From: Lepidodermella squamata
Lineage: Eukaryota; Animalia; Gastrotricha
Length of the DNA: 64,000 bases
Assembly (NCBI GenBank): GCA_047495785.1
Contig: JBLDXI010000013.1
Location: 3,720,001 to 3,784,000 of the forward strand
Direction: 5' to 3'
Below the pieces are notes generated by a model. It was given only the letters and a program-made list of their open reading frames with translations. It was not told the origin of the DNA and did no database searches. Position numbers and translations under genes: made by a program. This document shows positions 1-37,755 of the stretch, one piece after another; position 1 is the first letter of the stretch; every line of letters starts with the position of its first letter.

Positions 1-459
1 GCATTTTCCTTAGCCGCAAATCTATTGAATCATTCATTTTGCTTACAAATCACGAAATTGCAGGGAAGCAGGTCCTGGGTCGTCACCAAGCCACTCTTCG
101 GTTTCTCTTCGCATTTCACCCTAAGTATAGTGATATTTTCTCATTGTGAGTACGGTATCAATATAGTTCTTGTCATCATTTGCTTGAAAATCTCTGGAAA
201 GCAACTGAATCCCAATTTTGTTATGAGGAGCAACACATGTTCGGACATTATACTCCCGTTTTGCAGGTCAAAGGTCACACGTGCACACGTGATCAAAACG
301 TGTGATCAAAACACTAAACTTTAAGGTTGTTGCTAGTGTGGTAGTTTCGTCGTTTCGTCATTTCGTCATTTCGTCACCATGAAAAAAAAATTTGATTTTA
401 TTTGTACTTGATCGGTTCTTATGAGTAGACAAAATTCCTTAGTATTTTTGTTCCAAGTG

Positions 460-553
460 GTCCGATTTGGGATCACCACGGTGAAAATTATATTTAAAAT
501 TTTTATAGGCGATTTTTAAATAAAATTTTCACCGCGGTGATCCCAAATCGGAC
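460..553. repeat. Near-perfect inverted repeat (about 40 bp arms, 14 bp spacer), probable foldback/MITE remnant
   Basis: GTCCGATTTGGGATCACCACGGTGAAAATTATATTTAAAA (460-499) is the reverse complement of 514-553 with 2 mismatches. Confidence 0.8.
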
Positions 554-635
554 TTCTATCACTTTGATTAATATCTCACGGTCAAATACCATGGTATTTA
601 TTACCATAAACGAAGTTATTTTTTTCCACTGTCAT

Positions 636-1282
636 TCAAATCGCAGCTTCCACGCCTTGCGATGCTGGGGCTTGTCTGGAACCGCAGCAAGCCATGAAGG
701 CAAGGAAAAACAGAGTCTTAACAATTGTCAGAACTCGACCACCGAATAATATGCAGGCTAAAAAGAGGTGAAGGAGGCTGAAGATGAAATCGATTGTTAA
801 CACTAGCTGAGCTTACCTATAATCCCCATGATATTAGCACATCCGAAGCCATTTGCACAACCGTAAACGTCGTTGAATTCCAGGTTACTACTTGTAGCTA
901 AAGCTGCGACCAGCAAACCGAATGCCGTGATACAGCAGGAGGCGTAAAACAGGTTTATAAGAACTGAAAAAGCAAAAAATGAGCCTTATTCTTCATTCTT
1001 CGAAATCGTGGCATTACTCATACCTGTGACGTAGGGGTTTTCGCATAATTCACGCTTAGTTCGTCGCAAGATTGAGCTGATAGATTCTGCTATCAATTCC
1101 GTCGCACTGTACGCTACTCCAAAGGCAAAGGCGACAAGGAATAGGTCGGGGTTACCTCGGACCAAGAGCTTGCCAGTTAGGCCTAGACCGGCTGCCGTGA
1201 AAGCAAGAAGAACAACACTCCCAGACACACTGAACGAATCTTGGCTACCTCCACGGTGCGGATTGTTGGTAAGATCATCCAT
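636..1282 (-). CDS. Small multi-pass membrane protein, family copy 1 (3 exons)
   Basis: Exon 1 ORF MDDLTNN..FLVAFAFGVAYSATELI; spliced exon 2 YASCCITAFGLLVAAL..GCANGFGCANIMGII; exon 3 ACILFGGRVLTIVKTLFFLAFMACCG..AAI*; GT-AG introns. Confidence 0.75.
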
Positions 1283-3421
1283 GAAACGATGCAGTTATTG
1301 TGTTTTCGTGTATTCGGGAGAAAAACTCTCTAGTTTTCTATTCAAATTAGAACTATTGCACACGAATGAACTGGGAGGTTTCATTTTTTGCCTCATGTGA
1401 GTTTACGAAATATTTCGTCATTCCTTTCTGTTTATACCTCTTACTTCTTAGCACCTAGGCATAAAGACTTTAAATGACAAATCTCTTTATTTTTAGAAAG
1501 GCATCCATTTTCTCTGTATAACTTTGTCATGACGATCAGGTGTACGAATTTTGTTAAATTTTTGAAAAAAATATACGACATAGAGACAAGTAAATCTGTA
1601 AGATGACGGCGAAATTAAATTCCAAGCCACTGAAACGCCAAGCTTTACTTAATCTTTCGCGTTTAATTGTAGTCACCCTAGATATATTTTCTTGGGACTG
1701 GTTTCAATAGTTCTCATCTAGCATCATTATCTGCTTGAAAATCCTTGATTCTTTATTTACCGGTTCTCATGAATATAATCAATTTAGTATTTATTTTCCT
1801 CTTCCATTTCATTCCCAGCTTCCACGCCTCGCGATGTTGGGGCTTGTCTGGAACCGCAGCAAGCCATGAAGGCAAGGAAAACCAGAGTCTTAACAATAGT
1901 CAGAACTCGACCACCGAATCCGATGCAGGCTGCAGAGAAGAATGAATTTGACAATGAAAGCGATAGTTAATTAACCCAACACACCTATAATCCCCATGAT
2001 ATTCGCGCATCCGAAGCCATTTGCACAACCGTAAACTTCGTTGAATTCCACGTCGCTACTTGTAACTAAAGCTGCAACCAGCAAACCAAATGCCGTGATA
2101 CAGCAGGAGACGTATAACACGTTTATAATGACTGGAAAAGCTAACCATGGACCTTGTTCTTCGAAATCGCAGAATTCATACCTATGACGTAGGGCTTTTC
2201 GCATAATTCACGCTTAGTTCGTCGCAAGATTGAGCTGATTGATTCTGCTATCAATTCCGTCGCACTGTACGCTACTCCAAAGGCAAAGGCGACAAGGAAT
2301 AGGTCGGGGTTACCTCGGACCAAGAGCTTGCCAGTTAGGCCTAGACCGGCTGCCGTGAAAGCAAGAAGAACAACACTCCCAGACACACTGAACGAATCTT
2401 GGCTACCTCCACGGTGCGGATTGTTGGTAAGATCATCCATGAAACGATGCAGTTATTGTGTTTTCGTGTATTCGGGAGAAAAACTCTCTAGTTTTCTATT
2501 CAAATTAGAACTATTGCACACGAATGAACTGGGAGGTTTCATTTTTTGCCTCATGTGAGTTTACGAAATATTTCGTCATTCCTTTCTGTTTATACCTCTT
2601 ACTTCTTAGCACCTAGGCATAAAGACTTTAAATGACAAATCTCTTTATTTTTAGAAAGGCATCCATTTTCTCTGTATAACTTTGTCATGACGATCAGGTG
2701 TACGAATTTTGTTAAATTTTTGAAAAAAATATACGACATAGAGACAAGTAAATCTGTAAGATGACGGCGAAATTAAATTCCAAGCCACTGAAACGCCAAG
2801 CTTTACTTAATCTTTCGCGTTTAATTGTAGTCACCCTAGATATATTTTCTTGGGACTGGTTTCAATAGTTCTCATCTAGCATCATTATCTGCTTGAAAAT
2901 CCTTGATTCTTTATTTACCGGTTCTCATGAATATAATCAATTTAGTATTTATTTTCCTCTTCCATTTCATTCCCAGCTTCCACGCCTCGCGATGTTGGGG
3001 CTTGTCTGGAACCGCAGCAAGCCATGAAGGCAAGGAAAACCAGAGTCTTAACAATAGTCAGAACTCGACCACCGAATCCGATGCAGGCTGCAGAGAAGAA
3101 TGAATTTGACAATGAAAGCGATAGTTAATTAACCCAACACACCTATAATCCCCATGATATTCGCGCATCCGAAGCCATTTGCACAACCGTAAACTTCGTT
3201 GAATTCCACGTCGCTACTTGTAACTAAAGCTGCAACCAGCAAACCAAATGCCGTGATACAGCAGGAGACGTATAACACGTTTATAATGACTGGAAAAGCT
3301 AACCATGGACCTTGTTCTTCGAAATCGCAGAATTCATACCTATGACGTAGGGCTTTTCGCATAATTCACGCTTAGTTCGTCGCAAGATTGAGCTGATTGA
3401 TTCTGCTATCAATTCCGTCGC
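1083..3421. repeat. Direct tandem duplication, 1158 bp unit, apparently identical
   Basis: 1083-2263 matches 2241-3421 by eye; identical ORFs are offset by exactly 1158 bp (1170/2328, 1745/2903, 1971/3129). Confidence 0.9.
1784..2440 (-). CDS. Small multi-pass membrane protein, family copy 2 (chimera of copies 1 and 3)
   Basis: Same 3-exon structure; 5' part identical to copy 1, 3' part identical to copy 3. Confidence 0.75.
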
Positions 3422-4030: not shown

Positions 4031-4793
4031 TCACGCATTACTGGTCTCGCGACTTTCAGACCTCGGCTGGTGAGTCATTGCTGTTTCTTGCGTAGCTTGC
4101 CGATTGTTGTTACCCGTTTCTTCGTCAGCGGCGGCAGCAGCAGCAGCCGCTCCACCAGCAGCCGCTGCTCCACCAGCGATGCAGCAACAGCAGCAAACGC
4201 CACAACAGAAGAGGCAGGCAAGCTGAACGGCAATCCAAAATACTCGAACGCCATAACTTATACTAGCTACAAACACACGAAAAATAGAACCTTTGAAGTC
4301 CTTAGTTGAAGGTCTTTACCAATAATAGCCATGATATTGGCGCATCCAAATCCATTAGCACAACCGAAGATTTCATGGTTCGGAATATCCGTACTACTTG
4401 CTAGAGCCACGACAAGAAGAGCAAATGCCGTGATACTGCAGGCTGCATAAAGTAGTTGCCTGATTGCTGTGGAGGAATCAAATTTAACATTTGTTTAGCG
4501 ACCTTAAAGGTCAAGTTACCGGTGATCCTTTTCTCCCCAGCTTTCGCGCAAACAGAGGTGACCTTCTGAAGAATGCATCCGATTATGCCAATCAGGACTT
4601 CAAGTCCGCTGTAAGCGACTGCGAACGCGAAAGCTTGAAGGAATTTATCGTAGTCGCCACGGAACTTGAAATTGACGGTCAGTCCGAGGCCAGCGGCGGC
4701 AAATGCCAGGATCCAAATGCTCCCGCCAAATTCGCTGGATTCCTGCTTTGTCCCATACTTGGCTCGATTCTGGTTATCGCTCCCGTCAGCCAT
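4031..4793 (-). CDS. Small multi-pass membrane protein, family copy 4 (Cys/Ala-rich tail)
   Basis: RGDYDKFLQAFAFAVAYSGLE; middle exon with GCANGFGCANIMAII; last exon YGVRVFWIAVQLACLFCCGVCCCCC. Confidence 0.75.
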
Positions 4794-4991
4794 CTTTCAG
4801 CCAGGACCAAGCAATGTTTAAAACCTAAAGATAATGGAAATTTTGATTATAACTGAATCTCATTATTATCATTGGCGAAGTATCGTAGATGAAAGATGAA
4901 AGACCCAAGCCATGAAAGATTGAAGAGACTAGACTCCATTTAAAGCACCAGGAAAATTAGCCAAGACGTGAATTTCTGCGATTCCAATTTC

Positions 4992-5853
4992 CTATTCCAA
5001 CAATTGTCGTTCCTCGTGCAGGACCTTCGCGTTGTCAGTGATTCGATCCATCTCTGAGGATTCAGTAGCACCGGGTTTCGCTCCTTTCTCTGAATTACCG
5101 CCGACCATAGCTTGGCAACAAATGCAGCAAAAGGCGCAGCAAGTTGTGCAGATGAAGCACATGGTGCATACAATGATGAAAACCCGGATGCCATAGCCGA
5201 TTACAGCTACAAAATTAACCACATAGTTTCATTATTGAATGAATCATTAGTCCTAAATTAGACTATAAATCGGATGTAACTTGATATCATGAATCATAAT
5301 TCTTGACTTCGAAAATTGTAAGCGTTGAATTTACCGATAATTGCCATGATGTTAGCGCAGCCTGAACCTCCTATGCAGCCACATGATTCTGCGTAAGGTG
5401 CATCGTTGCCTTTTGACAAAGCTGTAATGAGTAGCGAAAACGCCGTAATGCTACAGGCGGCATACGTTGAGTTCTTAACGCCTTAGTAAAAAATGTAAGC
5501 TATAAATAGAGGCATGTTATATGAAGAAGTTTACTGAGCAAAACATGCTCGCTTGATTCGGCACAAGCATTGGTGACACTCCGCAAGACAACGCCGAGAA
5601 TTAGGATCAAAATCTCGAAGCTGCTGCATGCGATGCTGAAGGCGAAAGAGATGATGAACCATTCGCGATCACCCCGAAAGAAACCATGGGTCGTTAAAAC
5701 GAGTCCAGTTATGCAGAAGGCTAGTAAAAGGAGACATCCACTCAAATCGCCGCTGTCCTGTTTCGAGGCGATTTTCCTCTTGCTATCAGACGGCTTCTCG
5801 TCGTTGTGTTCAAGAGATTCCGAAGTGTCACCATTTTCATCTGGAATATTCAT
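4992..5853 (-). CDS. Small multi-pass membrane protein, family copy 5
   Basis: RGDREWFIISFAFSIACSSFE; middle exon with GCIGGSGCANIMAII; last exon YGIRVFIIVCTMCFICTTCCAFCCICC. Confidence 0.75.
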
Positions 5854-8267
5854 TATAAAGCAGCTGAGCACCTTCGACGTAAGCAAATATTATAGCTGTG
5901 CAATCATATAGGAATCGACGACAGAGTAAGTTTATGAGAATTAAATTTCTCTTTGCCGCGAATTAAGTAATAAACAATAACGAAAAGCCTGCGATATGAA
6001 TTCTGAGTACTCAAAATCAATAGAACGGGCGCTAATCTATCGACTTTTTGCGGAAGTCTGCAGGTATGAAGATTTCCCTTGTGTGGCTCAATAACTGGAA
6101 CATGCTAATCCCGTCACTCGCCAATTGTTGACGTATTATTAGCTTGATCTAAAATTAGAGTTATGACGTGAAGGAGATAATTTTGAGCGGCACCAAGGTA
6201 AACAGCTAAATTATTCCTAATAGTGATGCCCATCTACCTCTAATAAGGGAAAACGATGGTAATGAACCTTTTGTCTCTATCTCGATCTTATGTTTGGAGT
6301 TTGTAAAATTGAAACAATAGCGTAAACAGTAAACAGTAAGCAAAATTTTTGCAGTTGAACGTGACAAGATAATAACATTAAGATGATGGCTCATAGTGCA
6401 AATACTATGCAGCAATAATTTCCACGTTTTTTAGTGGCTGTGCGTTTTAGAAATAATACTACATTATAAAACAGGGGAAAAATACGGTAGTAGGAATATA
6501 GCATAGCGAAATATTCCCATGCCCGTATTAGTTATGCTTAGAGGCGAGGGTAGGTCATACCTAGCATCCATGTGCTCGCCGTATTTACTTGTGCAAAAAA
6601 TACATGGGCCACAAAAATGCATATGCGAGATACATTATACTATGGCGGCATATGCGCTGCTGCGACTGCCGCGTGTCATAAATGATGCATGACATGTGCA
6701 AGGTCGATTTTTCGCGCTTGTTTTTGAGTTGCGCTTAAACCATTATGATAGTGCAACTTATTCGCACGCGAGCAACAAGCGGTATGAGTTTGTTGTGGTG
6801 ACAAATAAGCCTTACCCAGGTGTGCCAGCAAATGATTTGTCTACCGTCATTTATAGATATATACTTTGTGTAATTATGAATAAAAGCACGCAAAAAGCGC
6901 CGATTATTTCGTCAGGAAAATTTTACTGCAAATACACTGCTGAACTGCACCTGAAAATGCTGCCTTTTGTTTATTTGTTTTTGGAATACAAACAAAATTA
7001 CCAATTATCAAATGCCATGTTTTACTATCGACTGGTATAATTCGGCGTCGTTCATAGGTTATACATTTTTGCTAGTGAGGAAATAATTTCATGCAGGCAT
7101 GAAGCCATATTATTGGTCCGTGAGAACATTTTAGCATTTCTTGCTATAGGGTTGAGTTGTTAACGTTAGTTCTGACGCCAATACAGCAATGCCAGCTGAA
7201 CATACTTCAAACTTCATTTGAATACGTCAACATATATGAAATTTACTTGAAAAACATAGAACGCACAGGGTGTTAAAATTCAGCGAAGAAAACCCGCCGA
7301 AAACCCGACGGAAATGGTTTGATAATTTTCGGTATAATACCTGTCCTAGCCCGATATCTTGGAATTGTTTGACAAGGATTGACATTTCCAGGAAAATTAA
7401 AATAGCCTCTGACCATTGTATAATAAATTGCTCGGTTCTTAGACTATATGATTTTACCGAGGTTCGAGCTTCCTCCGGTTGCTTTCCTTATAAGAATCCT
7501 TGAAACATAGTTAAGTTGAAAGAGGACAATTCAGTGCGACATTTCAGCCGATGTGAGCTATCAATATCGATCACTAATAAGCGTTCTCTTGATTTTGTTG
7601 CCCGATGGGCGACACTCTTTCGGGAAAAAATAATATTCTGACAGTGTGTGTCGTGGTAAAGGGCACACAATGCGATTTTCGCCACCAGCACCTGAAACCC
7701 TGCTGAAGATCGACAAGGCTACGAGGCATCATCGCTTCTTACTGAAAAAAATTAAAGCGACGTCAAATGCATAATATTTGACCTAATTGCTGGTGAGCAT
7801 CAGGGCATTTTTTGCCTTAAAACCTAATTTATAGGTCACACATTAAGCTTGACGGCTTAGCCAAGTCGATATAATTATCGATATTTGTGAGAGCGTCAAG
7901 GGTTCGTCTCAACGTGCCGCCATCGCTTTTTTCGACGACTTGACGGAGCAAAAAGAAATTACATACGAGGAAAAAAGAAATCAGTTTGTGAGCTGGCGGG
8001 TGTATGCGATTCGCTGTGTGCGTATGTTTTTCCTCGTATGCGTAAGAAAAAAAAATAGAAACGAGTTTGTGCGAGAACCTTTACCAATGTATTAAGCAAT
8101 TCATAAAACATCGAAAGGTACAGTCAAATGCTCATCCCTACGACGAATTTATTTCCCGGATAATATTTCCAACACCAAGGTAAGGAATTTTATTTTGCAC
8201 GTGAACTACAATTTGCACATGACAACTCTCAATTCAGCAGGATGGTTTCAGCAGGACATCCACAACT

Positions 8268-25113: not shown

Positions 25114-28100
25114 TCATAACGCATGGTTTTGCAAAGCGAAAACGAGTGAAGTCACTGTGAGGATAACAGCAATTATCCTTGAATCGCAGGTGTTTATCGA
25201 GGTCGAGCTGACAGAAGAATCTTTCTGGCAAACTCCGTTGGTATTGCAAAATGCCATAGCGCCTAAACTTGGGGATCTGCAATTCATGTCGCCGTAACAC
25301 TTCGAACCAACGGTATCTACGGAATATCAGAAAATCAGCTGAAAAGTTGGGATTGTAGCGAATTTTCAATTACTTTCGATGCAAGTTGTAGTTCCGTTAG
25401 TTGAGGTTTGTTCGACATGGGAAGGCGCGCAGTGGCATGTGTCTTCGTCAGCTTCGTCCAATCGTTTTAGATCGCAAGGATCGCCGCAGACGAGGCCTAA
25501 ACTACCGTCGCAAACTGAATCGAGAATAGGAACACGAGCTTTCGTGCAAACGTCTCCAAATTTTAGTGCTGTTGTAGCAAAAAACCGCTGAAGTTACGGA
25601 GCATTGCTATACAAGAAAACTTACGTTTCCCACATCTATCAGCTTGGAAATTTCTCACGTGACCTCTTTGACTGCAACGGCAAACTGAAATATCGGAATT
25701 CAAACATAAAAATGATAAAAAAGATCTCTCTCGAGCTACCTCATCTTTTGAAATAGCAATTAAAATTACCCATCGATAAATCATTTTTTGGCATTTTTTC
25801 CGAATTTTCCTTAAATTTCGAATATTTTATTCATTTTAATTTATTTCGAGAACGCATTCTAAAACTTTTATAATATTACATACAGATCACCCTATTATAC
25901 TGTGTGTCCCATTATTATATTTTCATTTTTCCACAAATACATGCGGTCTACATATTTTCATGCTTTAAAGAGACCAAATTCAAGCCAAAATTTATTCGAT
26001 ACTTTGGCAACTTTGGAAACCTTGGAAATATTCGTTTCTGCTTGCATAACCATCAATATTGGCTTCCTGAACTTCGGAAAATCGATCATTTGTAAAATCG
26101 ATCTTGGAATCGATATCGGCCAATGTTCACAGTATTATTTCCTATAACAGCCCGGGCTAGTAAAATTTTAACCGCGAAATATTGAAATATTCGAAAGTTA
26201 ATTGTTAAGAATCGCCATTTTTACGTGTTTTCAAACCGACTTGACCTCTCAAGGCTGGGCTGCTACTAGGGATGGGCGCCGTGAATTTAGCGACAGGGCT
26301 GCTATTGGAGCAAATACGGTAATTGGTAAACAGCGAAAAGTGTCCAGTAGCGAAATGTGAGATCTATCGGTTATAGGCATAAAAAAAATGAAGATTCGAA
26401 GAAAAATTTGCGCCTCGAAAAACCATGAGAAATCTATTGCTGGAGGCTCAAAAAACCGATGAAATTCCGATGGTAAAAGTTTTTGGAAAATGCTGCTTTT
26501 TTACCCGGTTTGACCCAATTTCTCAAAATCCTTTCATTTCTGTTAAAGATTCGATAATTTTTGAAATTTCTCTTGCCATAAGATGGGACAGCATCGCCTT
26601 TCATTTTAAGCTTTTAGGTCCTTTTTCAGTGTTTTCCTTGGTTGGAGTACTCAGGGACCTAGGATGCTAAGTAAGTAAAAATTCGGGAAATGTTCGTTTT
26701 TCACTTTTGAAGTCCAATTTTCATGGAATTATTCGAAATTTCTCACCGAAAAAGTCATCGCATTCAACTGCGCTGCCGCCAAGCTGCGGGCAGTGACTAT
26801 CGCTGACGCATTTATCCGCCGCGTTGTCGATCCGCCTCAACTGGCATATCGGCACCTTTGCCGAGAAGAACGCCGAGTCGGAAAAATCGTTCGATAACAC
26901 GGTTTGATAACCAGGCGGGCAGTCGCAATGCGGCACCAGCGTGTTGATAGGGTCGATTAGAAGTGACGGCCGCATCACGTGACTCATGGGCATGCCGGGT
27001 GTTCGCACTTGCGTTAGGCAGTACTTCGACATGCTATCGGTGGAGCTTTCACTCGGGAAGCCGGTGAGTTCGGGTGCGCACACTTCGCCGTGGAACCGGG
27101 AGACGGTGCCGTTTATGCACCTGCAGACACCCTCGTCGCAGTATGAGTTATTGGCGGCACAGACGCCGACGTCGAGGTCCTGCGAGCAGAAATCACCCAC
27201 TCGCTTTACTGAAATGAAAAATTGTCAGATTTCAAGAAAGTATAAACAAATGCCCGCAATTATAATCTTAGGTTTATAATGCATTCATGGTTGAAATGGT
27301 CCCAGAGAACTAAATGCGATCTGATTGGAAATCGGCCTCTATGGTGGCTTTCACAACTTATTGCCGCTGTTATAACGAGAATTCTAATGAAGTTCGTCAT
27401 CATGCTAAGCTTTGATTCCTTATCAGCTAACCCATTTCACTTCAAGCCTAGCCGTTTTGGATTTTTCAAAGCGAAAAAATCACTGGGCCGATTTTCTATC
27501 TTACCACATGCATACCCTTTCGCCACCCGAATTTGCAAAAATGCCGCCGTTTTCCAACGAAACTTTGATTTTATATTGCTTCGAATTTTTTATTTGATTT
27601 AGAGAATCCATGATTTATGGGCTGAATTATAAGAAATCACTGGCCCACAGAGACAGCTAAACAGGACAGGACAGGATCCCACTTTTACCGCAGAAAAATT
27701 CAAAAGCTCAAAATATTGGAGACATAAATAACGTTCTATTGGAAAAATAGAAAATAAGTGTTATGTAAATCTTGAATTACCGTAAATACCGAAATAGGAG
27801 TGTAGGATCACAACTCATCTACAATTTCGGGAACAGATTTGAAGCGATCTCGGTGGACTAAGCCTTTGTTTTCATAAATTGCCTTCGTAAAAATGTAGGA
27901 CGGTGCCTAATAACTCGGTATTTACAGTATACTCCGGGCTCTGAATTTCTGTAGAGCACATTTTTGTAAACTAAAGCTTTTAGAGCACATTTTTGTAAAC
28001 TAAAGCTTTTCCAAAATTGGCAAAATACAGATAGTAGAATCCATTAAAATCCATAGTGAACGAGGACATTACTCAGGTTTTTCCACGCTATGAAAATAAT

Positions 28101-28460
28101 GGAATTTTCTGTTAACAAATTCCCAATAACTGCAATTTTCTGGAGAATTTCCTACCTCTAAATTTGCTTGCTACGGCGAAGTTACACTATAACTAGAAAT
28201 ATTCTCTCGCTGAACCCTTAACAGCAAAGAAGCTCAATAAACAAACATTTTACGCATTTGAATTTTCGCAACGTGCCAATGTAACGAGCGCCATAGCCTC
28301 GTTTGCAGCCACAAACGCCCCATAGGCACATTGATCGTTGACAGGTCAGTTCGCCCATATCCGTACAGTCATCGTTGGTCAAACAGTACCGGGTCGCTTC
28401 GATGGCTGCAAAAGCGAAAATCGCCAAAATCAAAACGGAAAAGATCGATAAATACGACAT
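25114..28460 (-). CDS. Cys-rich EB/EGF-like module surface protein with signal peptide and probable GPI signal (about 5 exons)
   Basis: MSYLSIFSVLILAIFAFAA signal; repeated modules such as GDFCSQDLDVGVCAANNSYCDEGVCRC and FGDVC..VC..CHC; C-terminal hydrophobic tail IIAVILTVTSLVFALQNHAL*. Confidence 0.7.
27780..27927. mobile_element. Tc1/mariner-type MITE in an intron
   Basis: TIR CCGTAAATACCGA / TCGGTATTTACAG (1 mismatch), flanked by TA on both sides. Confidence 0.6.
27952..28009. repeat. 29 bp perfect tandem duplication
   Basis: TAGAGCACATTTTTGTAAACTAAAGCTTT x2. Confidence 0.85.
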
Positions 28461-28699
28461 TTTTGAAAAAGAAAATTTTTGAATTTACGAAATTTTATTC
28501 ACAGAACTATTTGTACACTACAACACAAGCTTAGCAACGCTTGAATATATAGAATGAATGGCGATTATATAATGTTGCAAGCTTGAATATCTGTATTGAT
28601 ATAATGTCAAAAGAATGGTGATATGAATGGCAAGCGAACAGAAATAGCAAGAAAATTCATATCAATTCATGTCATCATTTGAAAAAATTCTGAATCACG

Positions 28700-29853
28700 T
28701 CAGGCCATAACCAACATTTCGCTAGCTTTGGGGCCATTTCTGCCGTTCGGATCATCGGTAATCGAAAAGTGATTTCCAGTAAAGTAGAAAGTAATCCTCC
28801 TATAAAAAAATAGTTGTTAAAAAATGAAATTTAAAAATTCTTCAAAAATTACCAATTTTTAATGTAATCGGCAAATTGTGGGTTATTTTGCGCCACGTCA
28901 ATCATGTTATCATTAGATACGATAACACCGCCAGTTTCATAAGCAAATTTAACAATAGCCAGGTCATCGTATGGGTTGCAAACGCTGCCATCAGCCAATT
29001 TTTTACGCGGAATAACCGAAATGTGACCCTTTTTCTCCAAATCGTGCAGAATTTCTTGCTGCAGCGTTTTCGGCTTCAAATTTTGCGGCGAGCCGCGAAT
29101 ACGAATTTCAGGTACAAAAGCGTAAACTTCGGGGTGACCTCTTTCCAGAAAGAAATCGATCGCTTTTTTAAGGCCGAGGCAAGAATAATTGACATTACGA
29201 CCGTGAGCCATGCAAATGTTATTCGCATCAATCGCAATCGGTCGCAATTTCGCCGGTGAAGTCGAGAGGGTCTTCCTAATTTTCGGCGCCGTCGAATTCA
29301 TAACATCGCTTAATTTGACAGGAATGCATTTAACCGGTTCCGATTCAATGATTCGAGTTTTATAGTCAGGGTAGCAATCGTTCAGCAGCTTCAAAGCTTC
29401 TGAGCATTTCTTGCTATTTCTAAATCTAGCGACGACGATGCCTAGCGAGACATCGCCGCTGCACTCGATCGAATCCGCGCCCATCCAAGCCAAGTGTTGC
29501 TTAACCGCCGATTCCTTGATATTCGGCGTAAAATCAGCTAATTTTATCTCGACCAATGTCGGGTCGTTTTCTGGGTCGGAATTGCTAGATTCGCTTGGCG
29601 GCTCCTGATCCGAGTAAAATTCGTTGCTAGACGCTAGGCCCGACTCAGGTTCATTAGAGCCAGCGATCATATCCTGAAGGCTTTCGAAGGCTAAGCCAAC
29701 CTGGCTGGCTTCATTTCCAAAAATATGAAGAATTTTCGTCACCGAGTCGTTCATGATGGTAACTTGCGGGAATACTTCGCCGAACTCCATTGTTTCCCAT
29801 AGACTGCCTAGTTCCGGCGGGTAGGTTATATGTTTGTGGACTTGAGAGCTCAT
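28700..29853 (-). CDS. NYN/PIN RNase of the Regnase (ZC3H12)/N4BP1/RDE-8 family with N-terminal KH-like and RRM-like domains, copy A
   Basis: RPIAIDANNICMAHG, FFLERGH..AFVP, YDDLAIVKFAYETGGVIVSNDNMID; spliced last exon RITFYF..DDPNGRNGP..MA*. Confidence 0.85.
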
Positions 29854-30544
29854 TTTTTTAATAAAATTCTAAAAAAAGTATCAAAAAAGAATTAATCGAC
29901 AAAGCTTAAAGTGGTTAAAAGACGAAATGTTTCATCAATAGGAACGCATTTTTTTTACTGTCAGTTCGTGACTCATGTGGCGTGATACCATCAATTATTA
30001 ACGTACAAAAAGTAGCCCGTAGTTCTTTACAGCTTTTGAAACACCTGGATCGTTACGATTAAGCAGAAAACAAAGCGCGCAAGTGTAAAATAATAACGGC
30101 CTATCGTCATTATTATTATTATCATCATCATTTCGGTGGAGAAAAAAAGAAACCGGCGGTGTCATCTCTTTCGTTAATGTGCGCAAGGAGAATCAGACAA
30201 CAAAATGCTATACAAAATCGATTCCTCTCAAAAATAGATACCTATAAGCTCTAGTATTTTAACAATTAGTGGGATTCTTTACTTAAAATCTAGAAACCTA
30301 GAATTTTCCGCGGATTTTCTTCACATTTCATCCAAGTCCAGAATTTCAAAAGTCCATAAAAGTTAACCGATTGCGAAGCAAAAAATATTACGAACATCTA
30401 GGAGCAAACGATTCACCAGGCGCTTATTTTGTCACGATTTTTTAGTAAGCATATAAAGCAAAGAGATCGCCGTCACTTTGCGCCTCCAGTACAGCAGTAA
30501 ACTGGCAGTAATTATGAATAGAAAAAAACGCGGAAGAAAAGCAT

Positions 30545-32299
30545 TCAGTCATCAGCAATGAGCATTTCTTCCGCTCGTGAAGCGCGTCTTCCATTCGGGT
30601 CATCGATTAGCATGAAGTGATCTCCGGCAAAACAAAAAGTGATTCGCCTGAAAATGACAAAACTTGCTAAAACTTGGGAAATTGTGATAAAAAAATCACC
30701 ATTTGTCAATATAATCTTGATATTTAGGATTATCACGCCCGACGTCGATCATGTTATCGTTGGAAATGATGACACCTCGCGTTTCGTATGCGAATTTCAC
30801 GATCAAAACGTCGTCGTACGGGTTGAATTTCGATCCGTCAGCGAACTTTTTGCGAGGAATGACTGTTAACCGCCGTTCGCCCTCCAATTTGTGAAGAATA
30901 TCTTGGCGTTCGATGCGAGGGTTCTGACTCATTGGCGGGCAGCGGATTTTCATTTCAGGAATGAACGCGTACACTGAGGTATGGCCCCGTTCCAGGAACC
31001 AATTGATTGCCAGCTCTAAACCATAGCACGAATAAAACTGATGATTTCCATGGTGCATGCATAGATTGTTTGCATCTATTGCCACTGGACGACGACGTCG
31101 AGAAGGCACCTAAACCAAAAAATTTAACAAAACTTGCCAAGAATCAAAGGGAAAACTTACAACTGGGGGAATAGAAACGGGCATCTGTTGCTGAAAGTAT
31201 GGTGAGCGAGCTGAGTTTGAGGAAGAATTCATCTTAGGACGATTGCGACTAGAGTCGCTAGCACTTGGTACGGAACTAGCGCCAGCAAAATTTTTCCGAG
31301 AGGAAGCCGAAGAGTTATAGAGAGATTGTTCCTGTAAAGGAGACTTTGGACGACGAGGAGGGCCCGATCCGTGTTCGGGCGATGAATTATGACGCCGTGA
31401 AAGACCATATGCATCACTCGATTTAGGGCGCTGGGGAGGCGGCTGCCCTTTGACGTGTTGCTCCAGCAAATTGCGACGCGCTAGAGCGTCTTTCTTCAGT
31501 TTTTCCGTATCACTGCCATCGTCAGATTCATGATGACGGAAGTACTGCTCAAGTACATCTGGGTCGGAAACTTGGAATGCAGCTTTCCTCCTAAACGAAG
31601 ATCAATTTAATGGCCAAACTATCATAAACTATCTGAAACATACTTGAAAGGAGAGATTACTTTATCCCATGAGCCTTTAGAAATGGTACTTATAACATAT
31701 TGAGGATAAAATTCCTGAAGCCTTTCTCTAGCCGATGAACACTCCCGAGCGGTTTTGAACTTCACGTATACTGTTCCAGTTAGGAAATCTCCAGGCTTAG
31801 TTCTATCTTTAGGGCACTCGATTGACTCTGCCTGCATCCATGCAAAGGATTCCCGAATTTCATCGTCGGTAATATCGGGCGCAACGTCGTTCAACTTGAT
31901 CTCTAAACCAATTGGTTTGTTCTGATCATCGGAGCTACTAGTTGCTCCTAGCGGTATTTCAGCAGGGTTGGGAAGGGGCGCTGACTTATTCTGAAACATC
32001 TCGGCCATATCATTGTCAGCAGAATCACAATAACCATCAGCATAGATTTTTTGAAGGCATGCTTCCGAGATGAATGATTTTAACGCGAAAGCAGCGTTGT
32101 CAGCAGTGGCAGCATCGGGCCCGAAAATGTGAAGGATGCTAGACACGGTGTCCTTGATGATATGGACACCAGGAAAATTTGCCGCAATATCAGCTGTTAC
32201 TGCTTCGGACGAAAACGTGGCGGCTAAATCTTCAGGGAAGTCGACTGTGCGGTAGATCTTCCCACTACTAGATGCTCGATAGTCCATAGCAACCGACAT
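30545..32299 (-). CDS. NYN/PIN RNase with KH-like and RRM-like domains and an S/P/R-rich linker, copy B (4 exons)
   Basis: RPVAIDANNLCMHHG, YDDVLIVKFAYETRGVIISNDNMID, RITFCFAGDHFMLIDDPNGR; N-terminus homologous to copy A (ILHIFG, EIKL.D..P.I, AWM.A.SIEC). Confidence 0.85.
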
Positions 32300-33189
32300 T
32301 AACGTTTACATACACTTTATAATAATCAACAACTAGTAATAAACACAAACAACGTAAATCATCGTTCAAACAATTCTCAATACTCGGGAGTAGGAAGTAA
32401 GGTAAAAGATGAATCAAGAAATTGATCCATTCTGCACCAAAATTCACCAATACTGTATACTTATGCCTTACGCTATAATTATCGCGAAGGCCCTAAAATT
32501 AGGGGTAGAACAAATTAGCGATAAAACCTTCAGTAAACGGAAAGCCCTCAAAGTTAACACATTAGAAGGCTGCTTTGTTTACAATAACATAATAATGACG
32601 AAGATTCTCGCGCGTCATGTATTACATCAGCAATAGCGAATATTCACGAGAGACTAATGGGACCGATGGGATAAGTAAGCCCTGGCGAAGTCCAATTCCA
32701 CGCGTATACAGCTTTTTAAATACAAAAAGGCTCAAGACTAAAGAATAATAAAAAAGGATTAAGAGTCTCGGAATGACAATGGTTCGTAAGTTTCTCACTG
32801 AAAAAATTCCATCTCTCATACTTACACATTATCTGAGCCAGAAACGTCTCTGAACATCAAAGAAAAACGAGAAACGGAGAGAAAAGATAGAAACCTTTCC
32901 AATCTGATTTATTCTTCCGATCAGCAAACAGCAGAACATATACCACAGGAAACTGACAAGGCAAAGATAAGGGATGAGGGCAAGGAGCCAAAACAGTTAG
33001 AAAGCACTTCCGTCAGAGTCAACAAAATCGTCCGTCTATGGGAAAAGTCAGCTGACGCAAAGGTGACGGAAAACTTACACAATATATTTTATTTATTACT
33101 CACTAACAAAATATATTTTATATTAAATTTTTTATTATAAAACATACAAATTACTATTTTATTGCCGCATATATTTTAATCGATTTCAA

Positions 33190-34024: not shown

Positions 34025-37000
34025 TTAAATGTCTGCGATAACCGACTTATCATCTTCATCAAAAACTTCTTCTTCTTCCTCATCTTCTTCTTTCAGATTT
34101 TCGACCGCTACAGACAAAGCGTGGCGATTACTATCAGCGGATTTCCGAGATGAGACATCTGAGGGACGAGTCCCCACGTTAGCAGCCTTTGGGAGGAAGA
34201 GCCTGTTGTGCGCTGCATCAGGATCTTCTGAACTAGTTGCGCTTGGAGGATTGACCGGCAAGTCATTTATAGATGTTAACAAATGACGTCTCCTGTATGG
34301 TGCAATAGATCTTCTCAAGAGATGGGGCGATCTAAGAAATGGACGATAGATATATAAATCAAATTAATTTTGGAGCTTACTTGGGAAGCATTGCACTTTG
34401 AGCATCCGATTGATCGCTAGTGTTTGATCCTTGATTTCGATATCCATTGCCACCAGCTAAATTCTCAGTACTACGTGAAGTAAGCCCCGTCATACTTGAG
34501 CCTGAGAAAATGTCCAAAAGTTCGAATCGAAAGCTTGATATGTCCTGCTTAATTTCTTCCAAGTCGACAGTTCCGCTACTGCCCTGTATGGTAAGGCCCA
34601 TAATGAATCGGCGAACAACTTTGTGAATGACGTCATTGAAACGCGGAGCAGGCGCCGCCATCTCACGCCATATAATTCCACCTACAAGTGAGCTGACAGC
34701 TATGATGCCGTTGTGGGTTTTGTCCGCACCCGGACCATCTTGATTTAAACTACTAGTTACAGTCGAGGGGTTTGCTTTCGCGTCGTTGTCCTCGAGTGAC
34801 TCTGCATCATCGCTCATAAATGGCGTAGCTGCAGCTGATCTTGTGTTTGCTTTCTTGAGGCGGCTGAAGCGAAGTTGTTTGAAAAGCCGTTGGAAAGTCA
34901 TAATCAAGTATCTTGGGTTTGGAATGAGATTGAAAGGAGTTGGAACTGTCGGAGAATAATCGGCGATATACTCCAAAAATAATATTGTTCTTGCGTATTT
35001 CCATTCCATTTCTGAGTTGATCTTAAATAATAAAATTTTATAGTTCGCGTAAGTTGACTGAATCTTTAAATCACCTTGATTGCTTCGTAACTGTTCGCCA
35101 TCATAGCTATAAGCATGTTAAGCAGAACACAAACAACCACAACACTGTAGCCACCGTACATAATGTAGCCGATTCTCTCCACCCAGATCATACTTCCATC
35201 GGCGAAGTTTTGAAGATTCATGTAATCCGACTCGCCGAGGCCGAAAAGTGACCAAAAAACCGTGCGGAAGGTGAGCTCAATATCGCCAAACCGTTTCTCG
35301 GCCGGAATGTTGGGTTCATATGAAGAATTAAGCTGAAGAATTTGTCGTAGCGATGGATTGAAATACCAGTAAACATTCATAGTGCCAATCATAAAAGCCG
35401 CGAAGACGACAAGAAATACAAAGAAGAAAGCAAAAATGTCGTTAACAACGCGCATTAACGCGAGGTAACACGGCCCGAAGACCTCAAGTACCGGGAAGAT
35501 GTAAAGAAGTCTGGAAAACGAGAATACAGCACCAACGGCAAAAAGTAGCTCGCTACATGTTAAGGGGTCTACGGGATGAAAGTAAAAACGATCCGAATTG
35601 ATCCAATATAGCTTGTTGGGGAAAAGTAATAAGGAGGCGTTTGAAACTGGCTGCTCTGCGAAAAATGTCACAGCATCGATTGTCTGAAAGCAAACTTGAG
35701 ATGACAAACTTTGAGGCAGACGGAATGAATTTCTTACCTTGCCATAAGACATGAAACGGTAGAATAATGCCGCTGCAAAAACGGCCAACATAACGTAGTC
35801 GATAAAATCAAAGGGAGAGCGGCACACTGTTGCCCATCTTTGGTTCAACCGATTAGGAATGTCCCGAGTGATGATATCGAAAAGCTTCCGGAAGAGCAGC
35901 CCTAACAGCCAGATGCTTACAGCCCACGACATCCAGTTATCACCACGCGGTCGAATGATGAAGTCCTTACCAAAGCTACACATTTCTGCCACGCCTCTTG
36001 CGGAAAGCTCACCAACTGAATCTACAGCCTGCTCCCCAGAGCTTTTAAAAGACGCTGGATTGCTGCAAGGACCGCAAAACGCCTTACAGTACTGGTAAAC
36101 AGTTTCGTTAAGGTTGTAAAGCTTCACTGTTCGCGGGTCTGATATCGCCGACGTCAGATTACTGAGCCTCTCAGGTTCGTTGTAGCAGCCAAACGTGTTA
36201 ATTGACAGCATGCACAAAATCCCGATGAAAATCATGTAAGACACCGAATAAGCTACAAATTTAACCAAAGGTCTGGAGATAAGTTGCCCAGGTCTCGAAT
36301 CAGGTACAATCCAATGGAAGAACATTAAAATCGGGTAGCCCAACATAATAAACAACAAATTGAGGAAAATTTTGCTGGGTCCGGAAGCACCTTGAAATTG
36401 ATTGAAACCTCGCAACCAACGGCGCATAAGTTCCTGTTGGCAAGACCAATGTGAGACGAATTCTTTCTGTTTGTACTGAATTGCGACTCGCAGACGTGCA
36501 AGGGGTTCAGACTTGACGAAGACGGTTTCAAAATTTGATTCGCTGGACGATTGAGCGGATAGACCATTCCCGAAAAAGGAAGACTCTACCGCTGCATCGA
36601 CTGCTGGTGAGTTGTTGCTACCTGAAGTTCGTTGGCTATTCGAAGTTTTAACACTATAACAATTTAGTATAGTCTTCAGTTCGTAGTGAGTTCTGACGTT
36701 GTCGAGGAGTTTTACGACATAATGACTCAACTGCGCGACGAGCTCTTTGTACTCGCGTTTGAAATGCTTCTCCTGAGCCGCTCTTATCTCCATTTGCCGC
36801 GATAGCTCAAACGCGGTTTGGAAGGGATCTGTTGAAGTAAGGGAGATGTAAGCTTCCGACGTTAAGGCGCGGTACTCATTCAGTCGCCTCTTCGCGTGTC
36901 TCAACAGATCGCGGCTACTATGTGGAATGTCTTTATCCGGGGCACAGCGGTCGCAGTTACAGTCGAAATCGTGTGGCAGTGGGACTCGCATTCCATCTTG

Positions 37001-37755
37001 CCATAGCAGATGAACTATTCCAAAAAGGTTCTTCTGGCAAGCTAAGATGATAGGTGAGATGTCATCAGAGAACGGACTGGTTTCGGGCAACTTCGAAGCA
37101 AGCTCCGGCCATCTGTTGTGGTACTGACGGTAGTTGGGATGCTTCAGAATTAGCTCTGTGATGTTTTCGTAACTGTAGAACAATGAAATTGATAAACATT
37201 AGAACGGAATTTTAAGCTTACTTATGGCTAATCGCGAGAAGCAAGGCTTCGTAAAGGTTCACAGGGTTCGATTTATCGAGCAGCATTTCGACAATCTAAA
37301 AGTTAAGTTTGATTGAGATTGTTGTCGATTATGGGTGTTTTCCTTACCTCTGCATGCTCATTTACAACTGCTATTTGGATAGCGGTTCGGCCAAAAGCGT
37401 CGGCTGCGTCGCAGTCTAAAGCTGGATTCTGGCTAAGAATCGCCTCAACCCCAGGTGCATCCCCATACTCCGCAGCCCAGAAGAGGTTACGTAACTCTTC
37501 ACTCGGCTGGGGCACGAACATTTGCAGGGTCGATTGGCGCCGGCGCATAGTTTTGTCCGGGCCTCGATCAGGGTGCTTTCTAGGCGAACTTCCTTTCTGA
37601 AGGTTAAGAATAAGGATATTCGAGCCGAGATCGAGTCGGAAATGCCTCACCTTGCCATTACTTGCCGTACTGCTATTCGAATACATTTTCCGAAGGGCCT
37701 CAGGCCGGGTAAAGGACGTGATTCTTTTCACAGCCCGCACGGCTCTTACGGACAT
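34025..37755 (-). CDS. TRPC: TRPC-family cation channel, paralog A
   Basis: Ankyrin AAEYGD..GRTAIQIAVVNEH; DISPIILACQKN; PHDFDCNCDRC; YRALTSEAYISLTSTDPF; pore FRTVFWSLFGL; LLNMLIAMMANSY; TRP box EWKYAR; EIKQDISSFRFELL. Confidence 0.92.

Follow-up and report, generated by a model that had tools for sequence, protein, structure and literature searches.

Neighboring genes for Zc3h12a-type NYN proteins with a KH-like and RRM-type N-terminus in the gastrotrich Lepidodermella squamata

How RNases of the Zc3h12a type are targeted to RNA is still to be explained: in Regnases a CCCH finger serves this purpose, and KHNYN, whose di-KH domain shows no binding to RNA, is recruited by ZAP. Regnase-1, N4BP1 and KHNYN are all active RNases, and in human ZC3H12A the catalytic residues are D141, D225, D226, D244 and D248 (PMC5499597). 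A C-terminal CUBAN/CUE-like domain, which binds ubiquitin or NEDD8, is ancestral for the N4BP1-like proteins (PMC9888277), and the KH domains of N4BP1 bind EDC4 (PMC13586276). Regnases form homodimers and the nematode protein RDE-8 forms a heterodimer with NYN-1 (bioRxiv 10.64898/2026.09.04.749402). Here we describe two adjacent genes, gene A and gene B, from a 64,000-nucleotide (nt) stretch of the Lepidodermella squamata genome (C13:3720001-3784000 of the 121-Mb assembly; hereafter the window), which encode a catalytic core of this type behind a predicted KH fold and a domain that is probably of the RRM type. With a probability of about 0.7, they are old tandem paralogs belonging to a subfamily of Zc3h12a-type NYN/PIN endoribonucleases that is restricted to one lineage and has a KH- and RRM-type N-terminus. 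Within a known family of nucleases the arrangement represents a new variant of architecture. So far as the available databases go, it is confined to this lineage, and we infer its function from relatives.

Both genes are located on the minus strand at positions 28700-32299 of the window, an interval running from the ATG of gene B (32299) down to the final base of the stop codon of gene A (28700). A preliminary description of this DNA had reported two neighboring NYN genes in the interval, and both could be resolved as intact spliced open reading frames (ORFs) with exact coordinates:

29853..28853 and 28799..28703, minus strand: gene A, 366 amino acids (aa), two exons, stop codon 28702-28700 (based on the ORF, the sequence and a GT..AG intron)
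28852..28800, minus strand: intron of gene A, 53 nt, phase 2
29656..29841, minus strand: KH-like domain of gene A, residues 5-66 (predicted model and structural matches)
29344..29559, minus strand: RRM-like (ferredoxin-like) domain of gene A, residues 99-170 (predicted model and structural matches)
28855..29247, minus strand: main part of the gene A NYN domain (RNase_Zc3h12a), residues 203-332 (Pfam, PDB matches and the catalytic residues IDANN, YDD and SNDNMID)
32299..31644, 31590..31161, 31109..30700 and 30647..30548, minus strand: gene B, 532 aa, four exons, stop codon 30547-30545 (based on sequence and frames)
32066..32257, minus strand: KH-like domain of gene B, approximately residues 15-78 (alignment with the gene A domain)
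31676..31906, minus strand: RRM-like domain of gene B, approximately residues 132-208 (sub-threshold Pfam RRM_1 match and profile matches in the PDB)
31161..31590, minus strand: exon 2 of gene B, a low-complexity linker of 143 aa between the RRM-like and NYN domains (Pfam scan and composition)
30700..31109, minus strand: exon 3 of gene B, main part of the NYN domain (Pfam 1.2e-28, conserved catalytic residues)

All four introns of the two genes are GT..AG, those of gene B being 53, 51 and 52 nt long, and the region is eukaryotic, with a GC content of ~40-48% across the window. The linker encoded by gene B exon 2 is basic, consists of S, P, N, Q and G to 46%, had no match in a Pfam scan and is without a counterpart in gene A. 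The segment ILHIFGNEASQVGLAFESLQDMI corresponds to residues 41-63 of gene A, while EIKLNDVAPDITDDEIRESF...TGTVYVKFKTARECSSARERL is located in exon 1 of gene B. A look-up of the exact product of the gene A ORF found none on record.

The family assignment is carried by the NYN domain. In sequence searches, which were run exon by exon, Pfam RNase_Zc3h12a (PF11977) matched gene A with 2e-29 (102.7 bits) and gene B with 1.2e-28 (100.2 bits) at a cut-off of 23, which is well outside what chance would give, and the last exons cover positions 128-152 of the profile. The motifs IDANN, PYDD and SNDNMID are found in both genes and DDPNGR in each last exon. Alignment with fish ZC3H12A and ZC3H12C shows that the equivalents of D141, N144, D225, D226, D244 and D248 are kept in A and B, as well as in both genes of a homologous pair from a metagenome (L006, see below). 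The closest solved structures in a PDB sequence search were ZC3H12C (5e-26, ~40% identity), ZC3H12B and ZC3H12A, followed by KHNYN (6.5e-17). The two proteins end 15 and 13 residues past DDPNGR, the closing motif of the NYN domain, and none of the minus-strand frames of 27800-32600 contains a CCCH-like motif (C-x6-9-C-x4-6-C-x3-H). Likewise, the Regnase domains PF18039 (N-terminal, UBA-like) and PF18561 (C-terminal), both of which are carried by the matching fish ZC3H12A proteins, had no match in any exon at E <= 1. Since all motifs quoted in the preliminary description are present, the proteins stop shortly after the closing motif of the NYN domain and CCCH is absent, its observation of Regnase-type catalytic residues in proteins that end right after DDPNGR, with neither a CCCH finger nor a CUBAN domain, is correct in every detail. 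By analogy with Regnase-1, N4BP1 and KHNYN, A and B would be Mg2+-dependent endonucleases that cut single-stranded RNA.

The N-terminal region (the N-module), comprising the first ~200 residues of gene A and exon 1 of gene B, is 33% identical between the two genes and alignable end to end. Residues 1-198 of gene A were modeled with AlphaFold2 (AF2) from an alignment of four sequences, namely A, B and two metagenome homologs. The confidence score (predicted local distance difference test, pLDDT) reached 73-86 at residues 1-60 and 66-80 at residues 100-170, with a disordered linker at residues 67-96, so that the model is one of moderate confidence. In the first domain a strand (5-10) is followed by two helices (13-21 and 24-27), two strands (31-36 and 41-46) and a long helix (49-66), a beta-alpha-alpha-beta-beta-alpha succession as in type-I KH domains. 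A structural search that was independent of Foldseek and covered 48,161 PDB representatives returned, for residues 5-66, type-I KH domains only (Z 7.5-9.1), including those of PNPase, IGF2BP3, FBP, FMRP, Dim2 and ASCC1 as well as the following, given with Z score, root-mean-square deviation (rmsd) and aligned length:

vigilin KH4: Z 9.1, rmsd 3.1 Å, 71 residues aligned
SF1: Z 8.5, rmsd 1.9 Å, 64 residues aligned
MEX-3C KH1: Z 8.5, rmsd 2.8 Å, 70 residues aligned

Pfam KH_1 had no match to the N-module, and GxxG is found in the loop between helix 1 and helix 2 in none of the four sequences, which share invariant P, L, F, V, I and D residues and the motif LHIF. Residues 5-66 are thus predicted to be a type-I KH fold without the GxxG nucleic-acid-binding loop, present as a single unit that starts ~5-20 residues from the N-terminus of A and B. 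The degenerate KH-like unit lacking GxxG that had been proposed for these genes is borne out by this topology, modeled at a pLDDT of 73-86, and by structural neighbors that are KH domains throughout. The first KH domain of KHNYN is likewise without GxxG (PMC11997328), so that the same state in A and B need not reflect recent decay. Among the points that count against the preferred reading of A and B are the following: the mean pLDDT of the four-sequence model is 63; a single-sequence model of gene A exon 1 reached a pLDDT of 38 and was set aside except as a hint to secondary structure; and the Pfam families KH_N4BP1_1st and KH_N4BP1_2nd (PF23050, PF23052) had no match in A or B.

The second domain of the N-module is modeled as a beta-alpha-beta-beta-alpha-beta unit (strand 99-104, helix 114-123, strands 128-131 and 139-144, helix 147-160, strand 165-170), and this predicted fold is ferredoxin-like and fits an RRM without being specific for it. 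By geometry, RRMs match it at Z 7.6-8.2 (TIA-1 at 8.1, MEC-8, RBM19, 9G8 and NELF-E), but GHMP-kinase C-domains, PII-like SbtB, ACT, CutA and de novo designed ferredoxin folds match residues 92-175 equally well or better, at Z 8-9.7. The domain could accordingly be read as something other than an RRM, such as a ferredoxin-like module of the ACT or PII type with a small ligand or a protein as its binding partner, which would make the architecture KH-like plus alpha/beta plus NYN. Such a reading also draws on the loss of the aromatic residue in ribonucleoprotein motif 2 (RNP2), which here is IKLxD, on the erosion of RNP1 and on the Pfam RRM_1 (PF00076) match to gene B residues 137-196, which at E 0.035 and 14.4 bits stays below the cut-off of 20.7. 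Comparison of the N-module with the KH and RRM exons of two paralogs in the same genome (L003 and L004, see below) by BLAST and hhalign gave nothing significant (E 0.05-0.6; for hhalign E 0.05-0.3 at low probability). By contrast, the signals at the level of sequence come from RRMs only and are all in register. The sub-threshold RRM_1 match is seen in two of the four N-module members, and the two best PDB matches of the N-module profile are the RRMs of RBM19 and nucleolin, in register at E ~1. The equivalent of RNP1 reads TGTVYVKF in gene B, LGIVVARF in gene A and DGLIYAVF elsewhere among the four sequences, keeping the glycine and the last phenylalanine. At E 0.05, hhalign aligned the beta3-alpha2-beta4 part of the N-module with the second of the RRM exons of L003. 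Two of the weak matches to paralog domains fall in the expected register, and all of them serve as hints only. In addition, Foldseek, which is aware of sequence (3Di+AA), ranked tandem-RRM proteins first (HuR at 9e-4, HuD, Pub1, Sxl and PABP), and L003 has a significant RRM_1 between KH and NYN with a similar acidic linker ahead of it. Because of the Foldseek ranking, the in-register signals, the hhalign placement and the RRM at the same position in this paralog, the domain is likely an RRM, although this call is of moderate security, and a different ferredoxin-like module appears unlikely. Of the RRM-like unit claimed in the preliminary description, an RRM-compatible fold, weak in-register signals and a paralogous RRM_1 therefore stand, while the fold is not specific for RRMs and the Pfam score remains under its cut-off.

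When 1.84 billion representatives were searched exhaustively by HMMER with the N-module profile, two proteins only were recovered, both from one other organism: P0003, the gene B ortholog (6.6e-49), and P0004 (2.3e-9), which combines the N-module with an NYN domain (Pfam 7.5e-26). Their genes are adjacent and on the same strand of a 20.4-kb ENA metagenome scaffold, and the layout is repeated on three further contigs:

4319-7080 of ENA ERZ23486787 scaffold_2705, same strand: the L006 NYN pair, the two genes ~141 nt apart

The close spacing of the L006 genes resembles operon-like packing. Word-indexed searches with the N-module profile found only P0003 and with the NYN profile only P0004, while gene A exon 1, used as the query of a word-indexed protein search, retrieved two fish ZC3H12A proteins and nothing else, both matching via the NYN domain. 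Neither of the two profiles gave a match in JGI metagenome scans, and the N-module alone gave no usable one in the ESM Atlas. There, the named clusters nearest to gene A exon 1 in its entirety were KHNYN (0.78 and 0.76), a result that serves as a lead only. A description of a KH-RRM-NYN (PF11977) architecture was not found in the literature, of which the coverage was partial, so that its absence is not proven. The databases searched thus hold the N-module in only one other organism, and within them the architecture does not belong to any widespread type of ortholog.

The L006 pair also informs the gene models. Its gene B ortholog lacks the first and last introns: the N-module lies in one ORF with a linker comparable to that of gene B, whose end, ...IPPQV, coincides with the intron position in gene B, and the NYN exon continues through ...DWRITFCFAGDHFMLIDDPNGRR..., which supports the exon joins of gene B. 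The upstream gene of the pair is laid out in one exon like gene A, and the same phase-2 intron sets off its last ~25 codons; the position of this last intron is common to A, B and the L006 upstream gene. It is equally close to A and B (46-47% identity in the NYN domain) and may be either the gene A ortholog or an independent duplicate. Its product ends in ...SEDDHLLYTST, without DDPNGR. In all comparisons, the N-module included, nonsynonymous differences (pN) amount to 0.22-0.50 and synonymous differences (pS) to ~0.8; the latter are saturated, which is why pN and pS are given in place of dN/dS. Low pN at saturated pS indicates that the genes are old and under purifying selection. That A and B might be pseudogenes or artefacts of gene prediction is therefore highly improbable: all exons are open, the introns are canonical and 51-53 nt long, the catalytic residues are intact, pN is far below pS and the exon joins are supported by orthologous ORFs of another organism.

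A six-frame search of the 121-Mb assembly with gene A and the Pfam profile identified four Zc3h12a-type (PF11977) loci, a count to be read as a minimum, given that the search goes exon by exon. Two of them are in the window and the others are on C54 and C66:

C54:3259081-3262470, gene at ~190-2043, plus strand: L003, two KH_1 domains (both with GxxG), acidic linker, RRM_1 and NYN
C66:279516-282911, gene at 2426..~1340, minus strand: L004, two KH units and NYN (Pfam KH_1 and NYN), ~345 aa

The RRM_1 match of L003 is split by an intron and lies above the cut-off (8e-7), the NYN match reaches 3e-38, and the acidic linker before the RRM is similar to that of the A/B module. The NYN domain of L003 has PYAD instead of PYDD, with alanine at the position of the catalytic D225. 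Judging from this substitution, L003 may have reduced nuclease activity or be a pseudonuclease. L004 stops right after the NYN domain, ending in ...RDPCGRNGPGRDLLLNN and the stop codon, and its KH exon had no match among PDB sequences. Directly upstream of L004, separated by a stop codon and ~80 nt, a P-loop GTPase ORF is found on the same strand (MMR_HSR1 1.9e-6, weak AIG1/septin). None of the four NYN genes of the genome carries CCCH, CUBAN or any other C-terminal domain, and this animal seems to have no canonical Regnase (NYN plus CCCH). Because L003 combines Pfam-significant KH, KH, RRM_1 and NYN domains, the RRM between KH and NYN, and with it the order KH-acidic linker-RRM-NYN, is a family trait of this lineage, of which the window pair looks like a shortened, fast-evolving offshoot.

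As to the branch from which A and B descend, an NYN tree of seven sequences groups L003 with L004 at 90/87 and resolves no other grouping. The NYN domains of A and B score higher against ZC3H12A/B/C (E 5e-26 to 4e-22) than against KHNYN (6.5e-17), which together with the fish ZC3H12A proteins as sole word-search matches of gene A exon 1, and with the failure of the six-frame search to find a canonical NYN plus CCCH gene, would fit Regnase (ZC3H12) orthologs of divergent sequence in which the CCCH finger has been lost and a new N-terminus acquired, rather than descendants of the N4BP1/KHNYN branch. However, L003, with unambiguous KH domains, likewise prefers ZC3H12B/C over KHNYN, so that this preference does not discriminate between the branches and instead reflects the divergence of KHNYN. 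Moreover, PF18039 and PF18561 are absent from A and B and present in fish ZC3H12A, the N-terminal domain of A and B is predicted to be a KH fold, and the language-model clusters nearest to gene A exon 1 are KHNYN. Regnase ancestry is thus improbable, and the subfamily most likely arose from the KH plus NYN (N4BP1-like) branch, with paralogs of the diKH-RRM-NYN (L003) and diKH-NYN (L004) types being kept in the same genome.

For a protein of this subfamily the proposed order is a single type-I KH domain at the extreme N-terminus, an acidic disordered linker, a ferredoxin-like domain that is most likely a degenerate RRM, and the NYN domain, which in gene B only would be preceded by a low-complexity linker of ~140 residues. 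The N-module would supply targeting, in that the KH-like unit may act as a docking surface, as in KHNYN and N4BP1, and the RRM-type unit may act as a weak RNA- or partner-binding element. Catalysis would consist of metal-dependent endonucleolytic cleavage of single-stranded RNA, as in the rest of the family, and A and B could form a dimer by analogy with Regnase and RDE-8/NYN-1. The latter heterodimer, made of Regnase-family NYN proteins without CCCH, raises the further idea that A and B are an analogous or even orthologous small-RNA-pathway module, which like RDE-8 with NYN-1/2 would form a heterodimer and cleave Argonaute-targeted RNAs; the NYN pair indeed stays adjacent in the distant relative, with ~141 nt between the genes. 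KH or RRM domains are not reported for RDE-8 and NYN-1, though (bioRxiv 10.64898/2026.09.04.749402), and we regard this idea as very doubtful. An antiviral or RNAi role of A and B is speculation. It is a rather improbable scenario as well that the KH-(RRM)-NYN set, all without C-terminal domains, replaced the ancestral Regnase (NYN plus CCCH) and N4BP1 (diKH plus NYN plus CUBAN), with A and B as a co-regulated, possibly heterodimeric module that an RNA-silencing pathway, or an antiviral or anti-transposon one, has recruited via the GxxG-less KH domain and the degenerate RRM. If true, this would be a third way of aiming a Zc3h12a-type RNase, besides the CCCH finger and docking via ZAP and the ex-diKH domain.

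Under the preferred reading of A and B as a lineage-restricted subfamily with a KH- and RRM-type N-terminus, the same catalytic core combined with a single GxxG-less KH domain and an RRM-type domain provides a compact system for comparing the contributions of accessory domains. The product of gene A is well suited to such a dissection because it is 366 aa long, has no ubiquitin-binding tail and is encoded almost entirely by one exon. The presence of four NYN genes, none of them with CCCH or CUBAN, suggests that remodeling affected the entire NYN family in this lineage of invertebrates. In practical terms the value is moderate, as the function is deduced from relatives and two organisms are known so far to have the family.

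The pair is flanked by genes of other types. The upstream neighbor of gene B has the appearance of a TRP-type cation channel gene, and small ORFs are found just downstream of gene A, one of the two having an EGF-like cysteine spacing:

35066-37183 and 37303-37755, minus strand: large ORF for a multi-pass membrane protein, preceded by an ankyrin-like exon, putative TRP-type channel gene
28218-28460 and 26721-27200, minus strand: small cysteine-rich ORFs with signal peptide

Compared with known families, A and B share the catalytic residues and the C-terminal DDPxGR element with Regnase-1 to -4 (ZC3H12A-D), whose NYN domains are the closest solved ones by sequence. In Regnases, however, the CCCH finger follows directly after the NYN domain and UBA-like N-terminal as well as C-terminal domains are present, all of which are missing from A and B, where the KH and RRM-type module is found instead. 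The C. elegans proteins RDE-8, NYN-1/2/3 and ERI-9 are similar to A and B in having an NYN domain without CCCH and in occurring as multiple paralogs, and the nematode proteins act in pairs; these pairs consist of an active and an inactive member, whereas A and B both look active, and KH or RRM domains are not reported for the nematode proteins. MARF1/limkain b1, another animal endoribonuclease, has both RRMs and an NYN domain of the PIN-like kind. Its nuclease belongs to PF01936, however, and not to PF11977, the RRMs follow the NYN domain and LOTUS domains are added, so that the likeness to A and B is convergent and not homologous. N4BP1, KHNYN and the N4BP1-like proteins share with A and B an N-terminal KH-type fold followed by a Zc3h12a-type NYN domain with the full catalytic set, the lack of GxxG is common to the first KH domain of KHNYN and the KH unit of A and B, and the same-genome paralogs of A and B also have two KH units before the NYN domain. 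Whereas the ex-diKH domain of N4BP1-like proteins consists of two type-I KH units and a helical bundle (PF23050 plus PF23052), A and B have one KH unit without a helical extension and carry an RRM-type domain between KH and NYN; they furthermore lack UBM/UBA and the C-terminal CUBAN/CUE-like domain and are much shorter (366 and 532 aa). With a KH-type domain placed before the NYN domain, the design of A and B nevertheless resembles that of the N4BP1-like proteins most.

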